Assembly: GCF_963853765.1 (NCBI RefSeq)
Contig: NC_088860.1
Span: 3,596,001 to 3,660,000 of the forward strand
Length of the DNA stretch: 64,000 nt
Origin: Magallana gigas
Taxonomy: Eukaryota
Direction: 5' to 3'
Under the pieces are notes generated by a model that did no database searches, was not told the DNA's origin, and saw only the letters and a list, made by a program, of their open reading frames with translations. Numbering within the stretch: the stretch's first letter is position 1; every line of letters begins with the position of its first letter. The translations under genes and the position numbers were made by a program. Positions 46,630-56,881 of the stretch are shown here, one piece after another.

Positions 46630-46797
46630 TATGGCAAGCCAAATTCACAAAATTAGCTAAACATAGTTTCACAGTCGATAAACTAGGTTTATCGACTGTT
46701 AACTATAGTTTACAGATCGTAAACTATAGTTCTGTAAACTATAGTTAACACTGAAAGCAATCATCTGCGGTTGTTAAACATAGTTTATCTGATAAAT
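46630..46797. repeat. Left part of an AACTATAGTT-array repeat element (host of the KDZ insertion)
   Basis: CATAGTTTCACAGTCGATAAACTAGGTTTATC plus AACTATAGTT subunits. The same family continues at 55972-56881. Confidence 0.75.
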
Positions 46798-46819
46798 GAG
46801 GTATGTCCAATGCACGATG

Positions 46820-47500
46820 TTTTATCAATATTGTCGACATCGCAATGCTGACCAATATCGTCTATCGACTGTCTACATCATGTTCCTTCTTTTCTGTTTG
46901 CATCGTCGACATCGCAATGTTGATCAGCATCGAGTCGACATCGTGTCTACATCGTGTTCCTTCTTTTCTGTTTACATCGTCGACATCGTCGATATCGCAA
47001 TGTTGACCAACATCGAGTCGACATCGTGTCTACATCGTGTTCCTTCTTTTCTGTTTACATCGTCGACATCGTCGATATCGCAATGTTGACCAACATCGAG
47101 TCGACATCGTGTCTACATCGTGTTCCTTCTTTTCTGTTTACATCGTCGACACTGTAGATGTTGCAATGTTGACCAACATCGAGTCGACATCGTGTCTACA
47201 TCGTGTTCCTTCTTTCCTGTTTACATCGTCGACATTGTATATATCGCAATGTTGACCAACATCGAGTCGACATCGTGTCTACATCGTGTTCCTTCTTTTC
47301 TGTTTACATCGTCGACATCGTCGATATCGCAATGTTGACCAACATCGAGTCGACATCGTGTCTACATCGTGTTCCTCCTTTCCTGTTTACATCGTCGACA
47401 TTGTCGACATCGCAATGTTGACCAACATCGAGTCAACATTGCAATGTTGATCGGCATCAAGTAAACATTGTGTGTACATCGTCGACGTTGTCAATATCGC
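46820..47500 (+). repeat. Left subterminal minisatellite, 83-bp unit, ~7 units
   Basis: Unit ACATCGTCGACATCGTCGATATCGCAATGTTGACCAACATCGAGTCGACATCGTGTCTACATCGTGTTCCTTCTTTTCTGTTT. The spurious ORFs recur every 83 bp (46954, 47037, 47120, 47203). Confidence 0.95.
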
Positions 47501-48344
47501 AATTATGGCCAACATGTTTTATATTCTATCTGTATTACATTTGTCATTTTTACCCTATTGTAATTATTGAACAAACATCGTATAATGTTAGTGATGATAA
47601 ATAAAAGAATTATCCAATCTGTAGGTAAGTGTTCTGCTTAACTGACTACAAGTTATCATTTTGTCATTGACAAAAGTATCTTATGCTCTGCTTTACTTGC
47701 ATTGTTTGTAACCACCAGCGGAGTGATAAACATAAAGTAGGGCAGAGTTCAGTCCTAGACCGTTAATCTTGTCCCGTCGGTGGAATTTCACTATCGCACC
47801 ATTGAAATTATGAATGATTCTACATTTATTAGTCTTGTTAGCATGGTTTACATCGTTAAGATTACAATAGTAGTTGATATAAAGTTTTAATGATGTTTAC
47901 AGAGCATATCAACTATCTTATTCACAAGCTGACGACATTGTCCACTTTGCATTATTAGTGTTGATATCTATATGTATGTAATTAACTTTCATATTTTACC
48001 CCTTCAATATAGATAGCATCGTCAACCCTTTTATTTTACCCCTTTTATGACAAATTTAGTTGACGACATTGATTGTTTTATCTCATTTCTGCAAATTTGC
48101 ATTACTAAATATGTGGGCACGAACGTTGAATTTATGAAACTATATTCAAGAAACATTTATGATCCAATGCTTGAATAAAAACAACACTTAACACTTACTA
48201 TGAGGTAGGAGAGATATATTTTTAATCTATTATGTAAACTCGACATTTAGGAACTAGATCGAGTTATCAATAATATTAATACTTGAAAGTTAATCATGAA
48301 AGGTCGTGTACAATAAACATCATAAATAAAGAAACATGTTCACT

Positions 48345-51300
48345 TTACAAGTCTGCGATCTGGTTCGGAATGCTATTGACAACTTGAAGTTTCATCTTCT
48401 TAGTTGGGGGGACATTTTCTGAGTTGCTGATGAATGACTCCTCGTAGTCTTTAATATCTATACCCAACCTACTGAGGGAATTTGTCATCTGAACAATGTT
48501 TTCGAGAGGCATATCTTTAGTCGATTGCTTGATGAATGTAAAGATCAATCGCCCCCCTCCCTGTGGTTTTTCATGTTTGGTTTCTCTTAGGCCGAGAAGG
48601 CACAATGATCTCATTTCATCTTTGACCTGCTCCGCAGTATTGCGCGTGCTTTTAGTAATTGCATTGCAAGGGACAATAGGACCCGGGTATAAAAGGATTT
48701 TCTTTGAAATTTGCGGGATTTGAAGACTGGTATGTTGAAGAACACCCCCTGGTGTGTATCCGGATAGGTATTTCTTATGCTGCATAAGGTAGTTTGCAAG
48801 GCAGATTGATTTCTCTGTGCTGTGCAAGTTCACATAGCATTTGGTCTCATCATCTTCGGATTTGGTTAAAGCGTTTTTAACTTTACTTTGGAACTCCTGA
48901 GATAATGGAAGAGACAAACATTCTCCAATCAATTCTAAAAATTTTGTCGCATTAAAGGCCGCTTGCATTATCATGGCCAGGCGCTGGGTGTGTCCCTTTA
49001 ATTTCCCTAGTATTCCTGAAAGATAGTGTTTGTTTATGTAAGATAAAATATGAATTGATTATAAAAAATGTAATGGAAATCAAATTTAGTCTCAGATTAA
49101 TCAGTATTGTTTATTTGCATGATCAATAAAAGCCAGATAATGTGAAAAATATAATTATTTTTCCATTGGTTGAATTTTATAAACCAAATTATTTTTTTTA
49201 ATATTCATGTACTATAAATGTGGCAACCAAGTGGAAAGAACAAAGTTATATATATAATTTAAATTACAACGTTGTACAAAAATCAGTGTAGTATTTTATT
49301 TAAAAAAATAATATTTGTAAGAACAAGGAATAAATTTAAAATTGGTTACAAAGACAAATGTGGTAGATTCCACGCTTTTTAAAAGGACAGTTTTCATTAT
49401 AGTGGAAAACTGCGTCCTTGAAACAAAATGTGTTTAAAATGTTAACATTTTATTTATAGTAAGACTATTTGTTGAAAACAGTCATTTCATATTGTTGTAT
49501 GAATAACCATAAATAACCTCGAAATATAAGAACGCTGTGTTAAATTTTCTCAACATTCTTCAGGACCAGAATATTAGAGTGATAGTCGATTAAGTATTTA
49601 GAACTAATACTGACCGAGACTGTTTATTTATTTATTAACGCTTGCAATTGTTGTAATTTATTTCGTTTAATTGCAAGAAAATTTTATGTATATCGACATT
49701 TATGAAAGTGTCATAAAAAGTTTTGTAATTGAAGGCTTCTCAATATGTAATAACGTATAAGGGGATATTTACGTGCTGCTAATTTTTACTAATTTTTACG
49801 AGTTTTATAAATCCGTAAAAATTAAACACGTAAATTTCCACAGAAGTTAAAAAAAACTGCACTTAAAGTTTCTACATCGTATGTATGAGAGTAATGTTCA
49901 TGAGCTTCAGCTCAGTACCTGACGGCTGTACATGTAGGTATATTTGAGCGTTTTTAGTCATGTGGTGATAACAGTTCAGATCTTTCTATTCAGTCTTGAG
50001 TATTTTTTAAAACTACGTATAATGCCAGGTTAGTAGCTCTAGATGTCTTTTTTGGTTGGGAGAGAAAGATAAAGAGAGAGAGAAAAAATTTGAAATGGAG
50101 TTATCTTTCTTTTTTTCCCGGTAAATCGAACTGAGACGAGCACATGGTGTACATCAATGATGATACCCAGATAAATATGAATAAGTAAAGTGTATATCAC
50201 ATATGAAATAAAGGTAAATGTATAAACACATATACGGAATCGTTAACAGAAAAACGATTTTCTGATTTGTATGTGTGTTAACTGTAACAAAATCACGGTT
50301 GAATGTCCCCCTTTTACCACAGATGATTTTAATTTTTACAGGCATGTCTAATTCGTAAACAAATTACGCGTAAAAATTCAAATCACCCTATTTTATGACA
50401 AAAATCACGGCAGTAAAAATTACCCTTTATACGGTATTTTGCATATGTGCTTTAAGGATATTTAATCATCTTTTTCACGATAAGGTAATAATTCAGATTT
50501 TCGGCAACATCTTCTTAAAGAAATCGATTAATAATACCCATGGCTTACCTGATATATAGGTGTCAGTACTGTGGTTTTCTCGGAGGAATTCCTGTTGTTC
50601 ATTGTAAAACTTGACCGCCACTTTCTGAGCATCGTCATCGTAGATATAGACCCTTTTGGTTTTATGCATCTGGTCAATCACATAGAAAACTCTAGAAAGA
50701 AATAGAATGAAGATCAATAATATGAATAAATACTAAAAGTTGTGTTTATACATGTATGTACATGTAGTCTAAATTCTTAAATTTTCAAGAATAAATTTTA
50801 AAATAAATATTAAAATATTCATATAAAAATAATGGTATACCTTGCTAGGTTAGGTGTGTTTGGCAAAATTTCACTATTCACATCTGCATCCCTAAACTCT
50901 GGCTTTGGCATGCAAATAAGGAATCTGCTGTAAAGTCCATCATTGGAGTTTGCGTTTTTTCTTTCTTCGTCGAGACATCTGCATATTTCGCCGGGATGTG
51001 CCATACCACAGATATTCAGACCGGTTTTTGAACGGAGATGTTACCTTTAAATATAGATATTAAAGTTAATGTATAATGAAATAGGTCACATTTCAATAAA
51101 GGTAATAATTATAACACAATTATTCAAAATATATGAATAACATACTGCTACATGTCTGTCTCTTTAATGTTCCTCCATTATAGGCTGTTAAATAAATGGT
51201 GGTATCGTAATCAGAAGCAGATCCTGTTTTGTACAGCCCCAGGCTGCTCTGCCATGTCTTAAGTTCATCCCATAGCTGAATTTGTCTGCTATCGTTGTTA

Positions 51301-51375
51301 AGCTGCTTTAATAGCGATTCTACTGTAGCTGCTACAATTTAAAAAAGAAAATCTTTTTGCTTATTATTAATGATT

Positions 51376-51428
<53 letters not shown>

Positions 51429-52206
51429 TACAATTAATCTATTAAAAGTCGGTGTTTGATAAATACATATAATACTATATATTCTAATGAGTACTGGAAT
51501 GTTAAATACTGTTTAATATTGAGAACTTCTATATGTCTTTGCTACGTTAGAAAATAATTATTTTTGTTTTACACTAATCGGTCATTAATGAATGCGAAAT
51601 GCACCGTATATCAGTGCGGTATTATTGAAGTATGTGTGAAATACATCTAGAGTGTGATGGGTTTTTAAAATACATAACCGTATATATTTAGTGATTGCCT
51701 TTTTTTAAATTCTTATCCGTTGTATTACAAATTTGTACAGGTTTCTATTTTTACTATTTTCAAATGACTCCGATCAATTTTCAGGATAGACAGATTTGTA
51801 AGAAAATATATATATATAACAGTGTGGGGAAAAAAAATCTTTAAATTGGTTGTTGACACTTACATTGATTGACTCTAGACTGTAAGTCGCATATACCATT
51901 AGCACTCTCCACGTCCGATATTGCGTTACGGATGGCATCTATAGCTGCAGTTTTGTTGGTACCTGTAAATCCTACCGTAGCTGAGTAGATAATCGATGGC
52001 TGTGTCCAACTTCCCCAGGGACAGATTTCTGACTTGTTTAAAAAATGCGCGATTGCAGTCAAAAAGGGCGGAATTAAAAATTCCATTGGAACACTGTTTG
52101 ATAGAGCAGTATTTTCAAGCATTCGGTTGGTAAGATCATCGAATGGCTCCTGTATAGTTTCATTATAACAATATTCTATACGGTCCCGGTGCAGAAAGGC
52201 AGACAT
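48345..52206 (-). CDS. DUF3987/YfjI-like P-loop ATPase/helicase, 5 exons, ~515 aa, one 1-nt frameshift in exon 3
   Basis: Exons 52206-51864, 51331-51146, 51044-50841, 50691-50549, 49015-48345, all GT-AG. Walker A GFTGTNKTAA, SATVESLLKQL, Walker B QLWDE, LNICGMAHPG, arginine-finger-like NDGLYSRFLI, KLKGHTQRLAM, and a probable C-terminal winged helix. Exon phases only close if one base is added near 51021. Confidence 0.8.
51379..51423. repeat. (CT)n microsatellite in intron 1 of the ATPase gene
   Basis: Direct reading. Confidence 0.95.
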
Positions 52207-52384
52207 CGTCCAAAGTTGTTGGCGGTTTTTCTAACAATAACGTTAACGTTTGTATTGTATTGTTTACGTTACTATTGAAACGTGGTAAACGTGACGTCAA
52301 AATAATATTATTTTGCCAACGTCAGGGAAAAGTCACGTCGTTTATATATATAACGATGCCGTTAGGAAATATCTGTTATTAGTC
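52207..52384. promoter_or_regulatory. Putative compact bidirectional promoter of the transposon
   Basis: 178 bp between divergent ATGs (52206 minus, 52385 plus). Palindromic CRE TGACGTCA at 52292-52299, further ACGT cores, and TATATATAA near 52342. Confidence 0.6.
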
Positions 52385-55279
52385 ATGGATTTAAACAATT
52401 TATTAAAACCGCTTCTTAAAATCGAAGACGTCATCAAGATCATAGAGTATACCAAAATCGTACCACAAGGAGTTCCTGATAGGTATGAACATATAAGAAA
52501 TGTGTTTAATTTGAACATCAAAGAACAGTGAGTTGTCCATTGCTGACGTTGCGCGACTAGTACAAACATTGGAGACTTTACTACCACGATTTGGTGATAA
52601 TCCGGCGGATATTAATCGTGATTCAGTGGAAAAAGATTTGCAAAACTATATTTCAAAGGGGATTTCTGAAATTGGAACGGTGAATATTATTCCACCTATA
52701 ACTACATGCTGTGGATCCTTAAGGAAATCAGGACAGAAAGCGTGTATTGTTTACAGATCTAGATTTAGACCCGTGGTAAGAGTTATGTATGAATTGAAGT
52801 GTAGCAAGTGCAACACTGTATACAAATGCAGTACATATAAGAGGAAAGGATTGGAACTTTATTACAACGATGTTTTAGAGCAGGAGTATTTCATGTCAAC
52901 ATGCGACTCTGTGTTTTCCATGGAATTTATGAGGAGGATTGATATAGATATGTAAGTGTAATTAGAAATGTAAATACGGCTTGATAAAGACTGATGATGT
53001 TCTGAATCAAAATAACAGTAATTTTATATATTATTACGTTAAAAGTAGGAGCAAATATTTATTTGAATCATAATTCATACAATGTACATTTCAAACGAAG
53101 GACCCCCCCCCCCCTTTTTTTCCCCATTTCCCCGCATGAAATCTTGGTCAGGCTGTCGGCGCATTATTCACAAATGTATGATCATTATGTAGAATTAAAA
53201 AAATCTATTCCAATGAATATTCATCACATACGAATATCAAACATTGAGATCTGTGTTAACGTGATAATAAAACGAGTATATGTTAATATAATGATGGTCC
53301 AGAGTTTTTTTCCTTGTGGGTATGGTTCATGGGATAATATGAATAAGTTTGAATAAGATCCGATTCATATTTTCATTATTAAATTTAATTTTTCAAAAGG
53401 GGGGGGGGGGGTACCAGACCGCCTATCCCCAATTAAACAAACTCTAGATGCGCGCGTGAAATATAATAGAAAAATTCACAAACACAAATTTTACTCGAGA
53501 AAAATATTTTGTGGAGAAAGTTATAGCTGGTCCGATCATCAATGAGATTTTTAATATGATTTATACCGAGATTCAATATTATTTTTGTATTAACGGATAG
53601 GAAAGAAATTAAAGTATTGTTCATATTCATATTGATTAGCGAATTTGAACTAATTAAAAAGAGAAATGAACTTTCATCAATGAACTGTCAAAAATAAATT
53701 AGAAGATGGTTTTTACAATATGAGAAGGAAGATAACTGAAGTAAAATTAATGGCAGAGAGCTAATATTTGATTTAAAATGTTATAGATTCAGGAAATCGG
53801 CATCATTTGAAGGAATTGCGTATGCATACAATGACGAACACTTGGGGATAGAGTGGATGAATTCGCTGAACAATACACAGATATTGGACAGACGACGTCT
53901 AAGTGAGGCATGGTACAAAAAAACATTAATTGAAATGAAGAAAAATTATAACCTACAAACCGATATAGAATATATTCTTTCGGATAAGCTGGAAGGTATA
54001 CTGGAATGTGAAAAGGATGTCTTATGGGAGAAATTTTCAATAAAATGGTCTTCATCACTACATACTGACAACTGTAACCACGAAGGTACGAATTTTAATG
54101 ACATAATTCAAACGAGATAATATAATTAAAAAAACCATTGAATTAATGTTTTAATGACATGTATATGTATGTATTTATTAAGAGTGCTGTAAAGCAATAG
54201 TCATTGACGGGCATATGAAGGGAACACGTTCAGTTTGTGGTGCAACGGAAGTGAAAACAATTGACTCCGAAGAACTAGGTAGCATCCATTTGGGCTGTTG
54301 GAAAATGCCAATGAAGGGATCTCTTTATTGTACTGAACATAAACATGTGAAGGAAGAACATAAAAAGGTTATTACCAATACATGTATTTGCAATATTACA
54401 TTTATATATATATATAAAGTAATTAAGAAATTATATATTTTTATATATATATATATAAAGTAATTAAGAAATAATTGTGTATTTAAGAAAGTAATTAAAT
54501 ACAAGAGATTTCTATACTAACTAATAGTATCTGTATGCGTTCTGTAATTTTGTTCATTGCATTTTTTTTCTACAAATGCATAACCTGTTATGTAGTACAA
54601 ACACATTTGCAAGTATTCGCTGAGCAGGCAATTTTAAATTTAATATGATAATAAATTTGTGCTTGAAAGATAAATTTTCAACATAAAGTTAAAAACTTTT
54701 TGACAGAAACCAACTGAAGGAGCGAAGACAGAGGAAGATTCTGAATGTAACACCCTTAAAGAAAATGGTCATCTCCAAAAGTTCAAAAGTGCAGGAGTGT
54801 GTGCATCTGTATATAACTGCGGTATTATTAACGGCATGAGAGAGTTGTACGGATGTGAGTCTTTGACCCAAGTCTACATCTTTTTGATTTGGCTGGCAAA
54901 GGTGTTGGAAATTTTTCCACATTTACTTGCCTATGACGATGCTTGTCATCTAAAAAAATTCATAATGAATCCGATCAGGGCAGAGAAAAGTGAATACTCC
55001 AAATTTTTGACAACACTACGCATCGTTGTTGACAAAATGCATTTTGCAAATCATGTTGATAAATGGTGTAGAAGAAATGTCAACCCATACACTGATGATT
55101 TGTTCAAACACATTAACACGGAAGCATGTGAACAAACTTTTCAGTTTGTGGCTAAGTTTAAGTTTGCAACGAAACACATGTCCTGTGGGAAGTACAACTT
55201 GTTTATGTTGAAAATTTCAGAAATGTATAATAATGATAGGTTGGTAAGAAACAGGAAAAGAATCAAAGAAGATAAGTAA
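52385..55279 (+). CDS. KDZ (Kyakuja-like) transposase with CxC5- and CxC6-like cysteine clusters, 4 exons, ~540 aa, one frameshift near 52527
   Basis: Exons 52385-52951, 53787-54085, 54183-54367, 54707-55279, GT-AG and phase-consistent. CxC5-like PPITTCC...KCSKCNTVYKCSTY...FEGIAYAYN. CxC6-like CCKAIVIDGHMK...C...GCWKMPMKGSLYCTEH. Catalytic core AGVCASVYNCG..RELYGCES, AYDDACHL, VDKMHFANH, NTEACEQTF. Confidence 0.88.
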
Positions 55280-55519
55280 GTGAAATTAAACATTATTGGT
55301 TGTAATAATCATTATGAATTAATTGACAGATGTATTGTAGATCGATGTATTTAATTTTAAATGTAAATGATATATTTGCTTTCAAGTTGTGTAATACTCG
55401 TTAATAAAATGGAAATGGATGTATGCATTTGTAATTTGTATTTGTAAACAAAAAGCAATAACAAATTTAAAACGACAATGTTAACAATGTAAACGTGAAA
55501 GAAATATCCATAATGTAGA

Positions 55520-55960
55520 CAATGTAAATTTGATATTGGTTCAACATCGTCGACATTGCGATGTCGACAATGTTGACGATGTTAACAGAAAAAAAATATC
55601 GGCAATGTTGACGATGTAAACTCGATATCGGTTCAACATCGTCGACGTTGCGATGTCGACAATGTCGACGATGTTAACGGCAAAGAAATGTCGGCAATGT
55701 TGACGATGTAAACTCGATATCGGTTCAACATCGTCTACATTGCGATGTCGACAATGTTGACGATGTTAACAGAAAAAAAATATCGGCAATGTTGACGATG
55801 TAAACTCGATATCGGTTCAACATTGTCGACGTTGCGATGTCGACAATGTCGACGATGTTAAGGGCAAAGAAATGTCGGCAATGTTGACAATGTAAAATCG
55901 ATATCGTATCAATATTGTATACATCGCGATGTTGACGATATCGAAAAAGAAATATGCATT
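55520..55960 (-). repeat. Right subterminal minisatellite, 92-bp unit (~4.5 units, A/B alternation), inverted relative to the left array
   Basis: GATAT(C/T)GGTTCAAC recurs at 55532, 55624, 55716, 55808 (and diverged at 55900). The reverse complement shares TTTTCTGTT.ACATCGTC.ACAT.GTCGA.ATCGCAATGT.GA with the left unit. Confidence 0.93.
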
Positions 55961-55971
55961 GGACATGAATG

Positions 55972-56881
55972 TGATAAATAGGGGTTTATGGTCAGTAAAC
56001 TACGGTTTACAAATCTAAAGCACGCCAAATTCCCATGAATTAGCAAAACATAGTTTCACAGTCGATACACTAGGTTTATCGGCTTTTAACTATAGTTTAC
56101 GGATCCTAAACTATAGTTACCGACGTTAATCTATATTTCACATCTGTAAATCTGTCTGGAAATACACGTTTACAATAGATTTTGCTGATAAATATAGATT
56201 CACATCTGTAAACTATAGTTTACATTCGTAAACTAAAGTTTAGAGTTGATAAATATAGTTTCACGATTGTGAAACTATATTTATCAGATATAATTTGCAT
56301 TCGTGAACTATAGTTTGGAGTTGTTAATCATAGTTTCACAATGGTGAAACTATATTTATCAGATAAACTATGTTTAACAATCGCAAATGATTGTTTTCAA
56401 TGTTAACTATAGTTAACAGATGTGAAACATAGATTATCGCGTTAACTATAGTTTACAGACGTGAAATATAGATTAACGTCGTTAACTATAGTTTTTGATC
56501 CGCTAACTATAGTTAACAGTCGATAAACCTAGTTTATCGACTGTGAAACTACCTGTATGTTTAGCTCAATTTTGTGAATTTGTCTGATAAATGTAGTTTC
56601 ACGATTTGTGAAACTATAATTAACAACTCTTAACTATATTTTACGACTGTAAATTATATTTAACAAATGTGAATCTCTATTTATCAGCAAAATCTATTGT
56701 TAACGTTTTTTACAGATAGATAAACTATGATTATCATTCGTAAACTATAGTTTACATTCGTGAAATATAGTTTCACAGATGTAAACTATAGTTAACGAAT
56801 CGTTAACTTTAGTTTAGGATCCGTAAACTTTAGTTAACAGCTGATAAACCTAGTTTATCGACTGTGAAACTATGTGCCATA
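55972..56881. repeat. Right part of the AACTATAGTT-array element, with internally inverted sub-blocks
   Basis: Many (A/T)AACTATAGTT(T/A)AC subunits. GATAAACCTAGTTTATCGACTGTGAAACTA at ~56522 and ~56843, and the inverse orientation at ~56050. Confidence 0.8.

Follow-up and report, generated by a model that had tools for sequence, protein, structure and literature searches.

We identified a 9.17-kb DNA transposon at positions 46798-55971 of a 64,000-nucleotide stretch of the Magallana gigas genome (contig NC_088860.1, positions 3,596,001 to 3,660,000; this whole stretch is defined as "the window," and positions are counted from its first nucleotide). The element lies on C8 of the oyster genome and carries two divergent genes, one encoding a KDZ transposase and the other an AAA+ ATPase of the DUF3987 family with an MCM-like predicted fold. 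It looks like a representative of an undescribed lineage of animal KDZ transposons with a dedicated MCM-like helicase gene, the sequences of which may be catalogued in Repbase or Dfam. We favor, at a probability of about 0.6, the reading that the partner is a ring helicase that would be loaded at iteron-like arrays and would unwind or replicate the element.

Eukaryotic cut-and-paste transposons are usually described as transposase-only, and dedicated ATPase partners are a hallmark of the bacterial Tn7, Mu and IS21 elements. A full-text literature search, with Repbase and Dfam outside its scope, returned no paper that joins DUF3987 with KDZ, Zisupton or Kyakuja, and none that ties these transposons to an AAA+, P-loop or MCM-like protein. 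Articles about nematode Zisupton and about the KDZ elements of Cryptococcus (PMC12810828) and other fungi (PMC12730594) describe a transposase, at times with TET/JBP genes as cargo.

Structure, mobility and splicing of the element

An identical octamer, TGATAAAT, abuts both termini (46790-46797 and 55972-55979) and constitutes an 8-bp target-site duplication (TSD). The left end starts with GAGGTATGTCCAATGCA and the right end finishes with TGCATTGGACATGAATG. The terminal inverted repeats (TIRs) are short and imperfect, with only 12 perfectly inverted bases. This core is ATGTCCAATGCA at 46803-46814 in the left terminus (46798-46819, + strand) and TGCATTGGACAT at 55955-55966 in the right terminus (55955-55971, + strand), with five unmatched bases outside it on each side.

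A nucleotide-level search of the 564-Mb oyster genome recovered further copies of these ends. The first 63 nt of the left end are 97-100% identical in the copies L011/L015 and L012/L014, and the copy on C9 matches from base 6 onward at 97%. The last 120 nt of the right end are 87-98% identical in copies on C7, C9, C1 and C10. At C1:34.2 Mb (L015) lies a derivative of ~1.2 kb that has lost its interior. Its termini are those of the window element, and its 8-bp duplication is a different octamer, AAAATTGA. This combination indicates that the unit is mobile and that its boundaries are correct, in agreement with the TSD-bounded unit of 9.17 kb proposed earlier from the sequence alone (defined as "the sequence-only reading"). 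An 8-bp TSD was thereby found in two independent copies.

A second two-gene copy, on C9 (38.24 Mb), shares 90-95% identity with the window and is degraded, with deletions and insertions in both genes. The octamers flanking this old copy agree at only 4 of 8 positions, and no TSD could be obtained from it. Both full-length genomic copies bear disabling mutations. Truncated copies were detected on C7, C1 and C2, along with internally deleted derivatives reduced to the ends; TSD-flanked copies, deletion derivatives and truncated copies are together spread over at least six chromosomes. One deleted derivative with a truncated right end is repeated in tandem at least twice, ~6.5 kb apart (L012/L014, C1:68.155-68.165 Mb), and its left subterminal array is much expanded.

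Tandem arrays lie just inside both ends. The left array (46822-47515, + strand) consists of ~8 units of 83 bp that are dense in the motif ACATCG; within it, Tandem Repeats Finder (TRF) reported 46901-47439 as 6.5 copies of period 83 with 95% match. The right array (55473-55936, + strand), also detected by TRF, has five copies of a 92-bp unit and is inverted relative to the left one, the two being connected by inverted-repeat pairs I16-I25. The left 800 bp contain 32 occurrences of ACATCG and the right 570 bp 12 of its complement CGATGT, whereas the rest of the window (54.8 kb) has six of each.

The gene for the DUF3987 / MCM-like AAA+ protein (48345-52206, - strand) was modeled from splice sites, RNA contigs and profile matches. 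It encodes 515 amino acids in five exons (52206-51864, 51331-51146, 51044-50841, 50691-50549 and 49015-48345). The RNA contigs come from three runs (X3, X4 and X6) of two studies. All four ATPase introns are GT..AG and all four occur as joints in contigs of X3 and X4, with one also in X6; a single spliced contig of 1555 nt spans all five exons. The CxC5+KDZ transposase gene (52385-55279, + strand) was modeled from Pfam matches, RNA joints, reading frame and homology, and encodes 543 amino acids in four exons (52385-52951, 53787-54085, 54183-54367 and 54707-55279). RNA joints (52951>53787 and 54082>54180) represent two of its three introns, and the third was placed by reading frame and homology alone. 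The 178 bp between the two start codons (52207-52384) are a candidate bidirectional promoter; the ATPase contig extends to 52306 and the KDZ contig starts at 52394. The two spliced head-to-head genes, the ~515-residue ATPase and its four canonical introns, all predicted by the sequence-only reading, are thus borne out by the gene models and RNA joints.

Comparison with the RNA contigs revealed one gap in each gene. In ATPase exon 3, one nucleotide is missing between 51018 and 51019 (- strand). The extra base is present in the C9 genomic copy and in contigs of X3 and X6, and the X4 contig has it inside a 23-letter stretch that separates two aligned pieces. As assembled, the ATPase frame reaches a TGA after ~185 codons, where the translation ends in ...SVQKPV. 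In KDZ exon 1, eight nucleotides are missing between 52525 and 52526 (+ strand) relative to contigs of X4 and X6, which parts the start-codon frame from the CxC5 frame; inserting eight unknown letters behind 52525 leaves the open reading frame (ORF) unbroken from the ATG at 52385. Assembly error is possible at the 1-nt site and less likely at the 8-nt site. At ~99% identity, the RNA contigs of both genes match the window much better than the C9 copy does, and they lack both gaps. This indicates that other oysters express a copy or allele free of both frameshifts. In the raw poly(A) run X21, sampled at ~1 in 100, almost no reads fell on the exons.

Identity of the two proteins

In Pfam searches, exon 4 of the window alone matched the KDZ model PF18758 at 34.4 bits (cutoff 26.6; E = 2.3e-8), and rotifer homologs of the transposase scored 33.4 and 37.5 bits. 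The sequence-only reading had called the protein a CxC5/CxC6-KDZ transposase. The KDZ part of that label holds. For CxC5 (PF18718), exon 1 of the window reached 24 bits, just below the cutoff of 26.9, with collinear homologs at 45.6 (rotifer), 33.7 and 28 bits. CxC6 was absent among the Pfam matches of the window up to E = 1. The rotifer homologs, which are intronless and collinear, passed both the KDZ and the CxC5 models.

A structural model of a rotifer transposase (mean predicted local distance difference test score, pLDDT, 78.9) was closest to the ISCth4 transposase (Z 11.0 over 281 residues), followed by Tn5 (Z 9.6). Further matches were retroviral integrases, IstA, TnsB and MuA at Z 7-9 (7.4-8.6 for the last three), as well as Hermes. 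DG, YDDACHL and NTExCEQ form part of the consensus of the alignment, and all three occur in the window, the last as NTEACEQ; YDDACHL and NTEACEQ had been noted before from the sequence. In the modeled core, the first two motifs lie on strands and the third on a helix, a placement that would fit the DDE catalytic triad. By profile and model, then, the protein is a KDZ-superfamily transposase with a predicted RNase H-like DDE fold. We know of no biochemical study of a KDZ enzyme to date.

Kyakuja elements have a 7-bp TSD and no TIRs, while Zisupton and Dileera have an 8-bp TSD (PMC12730594), as does Cryptococcus KDZ1, which is mobile in the laboratory (PMC12810828). Because it has an 8-bp TSD and TIRs, the oyster element would fit a Zisupton-type KDZ transposon rather than a Kyakuja, an assignment made by TSD length and not by a phylogeny with named references; the earlier "Kyakuja-like" label is accordingly replaced by a likeness to Zisupton, Dileera and KDZ1. 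It shares with these three the KDZ domain with a putative N-terminal CxC zinc cluster, the 8-bp TSD, a multi-exon transposase gene, a large size (9-11 kb) and a tendency toward extra genes. It differs in its very short TIRs (12 bp), in place of which it has long subterminal tandem arrays, and in its P-loop/helicase gene, which no described member has in the searchable literature; the cargo of fungal elements is a TET/JBP dioxygenase. Transposases of the present lineage are also shorter, at ~545-575 amino acids compared with up to 1400 in fish and nematode Zisupton.

For the partner, exon-by-exon matches of the window to DUF3987 in Pfam were weak but collinear. The spliced 515-residue protein, with an X at the break, scored 107 bits against a profile built from seven prokaryotic DUF3987 members only. 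Its ortholog in Saccostrea cucullata (P0088), which is 80.5% identical, scored 88.5 bits on PF13148 (cutoff 27). Of the domain models named for checking in the sequence-only reading, KDZ PF18758 and DUF3987 PF13148 thus gave matches above cutoff, the latter via the ortholog.

We compared the model of P0088 (pLDDT 83.4; predicted template modeling score, pTM, 0.78) with known structures. It matched the MCM AAA+ domain of Mcm5 in 3ja8 at Z 16.5 (root mean square deviation 3.9, 276 residues) and ten more MCM entries at Z 13-16 (alignments of 250-278 residues), and 49 of the top 50 Foldseek matches were MCM chains. Other fold matches included MCM8/9, BrxL, RavA, BchI, ComM and the SCCmec helicase Cch (Z 10.3). 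Residues 388-472 correspond to a MarR-type winged helix (Z ~9). Among 28 aligned homologs, the Walker A lysine K94 is kept in at least 90%, D145 is invariant and E146 nearly so; the Walker A of the animal clade reads GxxxxNK[ST] and the Walker B DE. An "AHP" stretch and the glycine of "DGLxxRFL" are as well conserved as the Walker motifs. "AHP" resembles the MCM sensor-1 "AAANP," and "SRFL" within DGLxxRFL resembles the MCM arginine-finger "SRFD"; they may be the counterparts of these motifs. Structure comparison hence confirms the earlier AAA+/helicase assignment with a C-terminal winged helix, and as modeled the partner is an MCM-clade AAA+ ATPase.

The only characterized member of the DUF3987 family is bacterial AgaPH, which unwinds DNA 5' to 3' as an oligomer and requires Walker A and B to do so (PMC11724360); in primase fusions, DUF3987 stands in for MCM, DnaB or RepA domains (PMC5862659). 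The animal proteins share with prokaryotic DUF3987 helicases (AgaPH, PriCT-DUF3987 and primase fusions) the Pfam family, the Walker motifs and an AAA+ core with a small C-terminal domain. Both are always found on mobile elements, the prokaryotic carriers being plasmids, phages and integrative elements. Prokaryotic members belong to replication modules, where a primase-polymerase accompanies them or forms part of the same protein. The animal genes encode neither a primase nor a PriCT domain; they contain spliceosomal introns, and their partner is a DDE transposase gene.

The main rival to a helicase is a transposition regulator or target selector like TnsC of Tn7, MuB of Mu and IstB of IS21. 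Such a protein would form an ATP-dependent oligomer on target or donor DNA, bring in the KDZ transposase and switch it on, and might also provide target immunity, with no processive unwinding. The attraction of this explanation is that a DDE transposase with a separate, co-inherited AAA+ ATPase, as here, is also found in Tn7, Mu and IS21, as far as we are aware the only systems of the kind for which the mechanism has been worked out, and that the transposase model resembles the transposases of those systems (IstA, TnsB and MuA, as above). However, the 50 best structural matches of the ATPase model include no chain of IstB, TnsC or MuB; the core of the model falls with the MCM/ComM/Cch clade (Z 10-16.5), and the one characterized DUF3987 protein is a true helicase (PMC11724360). 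TnsC, MuB and IstB belong to another AAA+ clade, are bacterial and act in target capture and activation, not unwinding. As far as the 50 best matches go, the fold is of the MCM clade and not of the kind of these bacterial partners, which the sequence-only reading had named as parallels. We consider a regulator unlikely.

Linkage, co-divergence and possible roles of the partner

To find homologs, we searched exon 1 against 1.84 billion representative proteins, ran a profile search and then read the DNA around the matches. Homologs were identified in Saccostrea cucullata, Mytilus edulis, Mytilus coruscus, five species of bdelloid rotifers, and marine and other metagenomes. The distribution is patchy, comprising bivalves, bdelloid rotifers and marine metagenomes.

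The two genes were linked at 12 loci, divergently at 11 and in tandem at one. In the oyster genome, the divergent loci are the window on C8, the degraded C9 copy at 38.24 Mb, a locus at C4:24.88-24.90 Mb with ~50% protein identity and a degraded locus at C1:25.26 Mb. Four divergent families of the pair coexist in this one genome. The other divergently arranged loci are in S. cucullata (L030, with both genes annotated), M. coruscus (L028), M. edulis (L033), the rotifers Adineta steineri (L031) and Rotaria socialis (L032), and two rotifer-like metagenome contigs (L027 and an ERZ25069412 contig). The tandem locus, on a 5.2-kb contig of a JGI metagenome (L026), has the ATPase gene first and both genes intronless; its ATPase is 793 amino acids long, with a long C-terminal extension.

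Among loci with several ATPase exons and enough flanking sequence, none lacked a KDZ neighbor. The concern that the ATPase might usually lie away from KDZ genes is met by adjacency wherever the flank sufficed. A Tara Oceans contig (L029) begins at the ATPase start codon, so that its KDZ side is missing, and was left out of the count, as were three contigs with P0076, the neighbors of which had no Pfam match. KDZ-only truncated copies (C2, C7 and C1:6.0 Mb) and a lone fragment of ATPase exon 1 (C1:64.25 Mb) are uninformative on linkage. Three further loci (L006-L008, at C1:55.34, 60.01 and 62.50 Mb) contain only the last ATPase exon and its flanks (window 48035-49442), with DNA ~83% identical. 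They have internal stop codons, and no other exon or KDZ gene was found less than 4 kb away; they could be what is left of a sister family, or a piece dispersed by a different element.

Maximum-likelihood trees of the ATPase and KDZ proteins from ten loci have identical topology. Rotifers form two pairs, and among the bivalves C4 is outermost, followed by M. coruscus, M. edulis, and Saccostrea with the window. Three branches in the ATPase tree and six in the KDZ tree are well supported. As the synonymous substitution rate (dS) is saturated between species, we give the proportions of replacement (pN) and synonymous (pS) differences instead of dN/dS. Between the window and Saccostrea, pN is 0.117 and pS 0.819 for the ATPase, and 0.124 and 0.688 for KDZ. 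Replacement sites are unsaturated where synonymous sites are saturated, which indicates that both proteins were under strong selection while the lineage spread. These comparative data rule out a chance capture of the ATPase in this single copy, and the pairing seems to be one ancient association. Co-inheritance and selection suit a regulator as well as a helicase, and comparative data of this sort favor neither over the other.

Subterminal arrays are conserved as well. In Saccostrea and both Mytilus species, arrays of 82-92 bp with an ACATCG-type motif lie outside the KDZ 3' end, and in Saccostrea and M. edulis an array also lies beyond the ATPase 3' end. The ACATCG arrays have thus been kept in the oyster, Saccostrea and Mytilus despite saturated synonymous sites. 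The rotifer-like contig L027 has inverted arrays with a different motif. We did not detect the 12-bp terminal core at the C4 locus or at those of Saccostrea and Mytilus, which suggests that the termini are family-specific.

Rotifer copies encode a third, conserved ORF of ~780 amino acids downstream of KDZ on the same strand (L027, 2045-4393; L031, 4468-6162; L032, 4299-6213; all - strand), with 37-51% identity between species. In L027 it lies within the inverted arrays. It had no Pfam match and no counterpart in the bivalve elements. The ORF shows that the lineage tolerates cargo, and fungal KDZ elements have repeatedly gained TET/JBP dioxygenases with indirect roles (PMC12730594). Both observations would suit an ATPase that is a long-term passenger and helps the element indirectly, outside the transposition reaction itself, through donor-gap repair, anti-silencing, or competition with other elements or viruses. 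In the present lineage, however, bivalves and rotifers have retained the linkage, the orientation and a short shared intergenic region, the two gene trees agree, and TET/JBP cargo was gained many times independently, as opposed to a seemingly single association here. We therefore regard a passenger as improbable, more so than a regulator.

The introns, expression and purifying selection of both genes could also be expected of a conserved host gene pair, or of two domesticated genes that happen to lie between repeats. Such genes would hardly be flanked by different 8-bp TSDs in different copies, occur as deleted and truncated copies over at least six chromosomes with both full-length genomic copies disabled, form four divergent families in one genome and be so patchily distributed. 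A host origin of this kind is very improbable.

In the helicase reading that we favor, the transposase would cut and join the ends, generating the 8-bp TSD. The partner would form a helicase ring on the iteron-like arrays near the ends, via its winged helix or via the transposase, and would either open the ends or power replication of the nicked or excised element. The outcome could be replicative (copy-out) transposition, or an excised copy guarded against loss, as proposed for SCCmec Cch. We favor a helicase because the sole characterized DUF3987 member is one, because the fold relatives are replicative helicases and because the arrays resemble iterons. A further, weak lead is the best match of the transposase model, ISCth4, which is an IS256-family enzyme; IS256-family elements move by copy-out/paste-in. 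The lead is weak because its Z of 11.0 is near the 9.6 of Tn5.

Several points weigh against this interpretation. The window copy is disabled by one frameshift per gene, and neither protein can be made from it as assembled. The activities of both proteins in this lineage are predicted from sequence and models, and the placement with Zisupton follows TSD length, as stated above. The element encodes no primase or polymerase, so that any replication would need host enzymes. An MCM-like fold is no proof of a helicase, as the clade relatives RavA, BchI and BrxL are not considered replicative helicases, and the Walker A motif has N at a consensus G position. A structure-based binding test of the rotifer transposase (573 amino acids) with the rotifer ATPase (405 amino acids, winged helix absent) scored 0.00, a result that counts neither for nor against binding.

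A bolder version, which we hold to be possible but doubtful, is a plasmid-like lineage of DDE transposons in animals. Its own MCM-like helicase would act on the arrays, replication would occur during or after excision (by copy-out/paste-in or as an episomal circle), and the helicase gene would have come in a single acquisition from a replication module of prokaryotic or viral origin and have gained introns afterward. Such a lineage would parallel, in eukaryotes, IS256-type copy-out or SCCmec-type replication after excision. Cch of staphylococcal SCCmec (PDB 5dgk) is likewise an MCM-clade helicase on an element moved by a recombinase, and is reportedly a precedent for replication of an excised element; it differs in being bacterial, in belonging to the DUF927 family and in having serine recombinases instead of a DDE transposase as partners. 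Among eukaryotic DNA transposons, Helitrons also have their own helicase. Theirs is a Pif1-type helicase of superfamily 1 (SF1) fused to an HUH nuclease, and they produce no TSD, whereas the oyster element has separate genes for the DDE transposase and an AAA+ protein of superfamily 6 (SF6) type and an 8-bp TSD.

Retention of an MCM-type helicase gene across two animal phyla, with a candidate promoter region in common with the transposase and under equally strong selection, suggests a need for DNA unwinding or element replication. This would bear on the mechanism of KDZ enzymes and on the passage of prokaryotic or viral replication modules into animal genomes, and many mollusc and rotifer genes annotated as "uncharacterized DUF3987" would be transposon genes. 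The pair is compact (~570 plus 400-700 amino acids in the intronless rotifer forms) and frameshift-free oyster transcripts exist, which makes it directly testable.

Minor features in and around the element

The insertion site is a block of 20-21-bp palindromic units (TAAACTATAGTTTAC-like) at 46650-46790 and 55990-56880, with many long inverted repeats. An 81-bp segment, 93% identical between the two sides, lies 67 bp beyond each element end. The presence of these repeats on both sides indicates that the target was a satellite-like region or one resembling miniature inverted-repeat transposable elements (MITEs).

ATPase intron 4 contains a nested ~690-bp interspersed repeat (49750-50437), of which we found at least 30 genome copies at 82-92% identity. 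This segment has by far the greatest depth in the RNA runs, up to ~740. The repeat is thus a short element, abundant and transcribed, that has no relation to the KDZ unit.

KDZ intron 1 contains a C12T4 run (53102-53119) and an A4G12 run (53395-53412), which form inverted arms 275 nt apart and are also present in the C9 copy. Raw RNA reads have strand-switch joints exactly at these arms, probably a hairpin artifact from library making. In ATPase intron 1, a perfect (TC)23 microsatellite occupies 51379-51424, and RNA contigs seem to be cut there.

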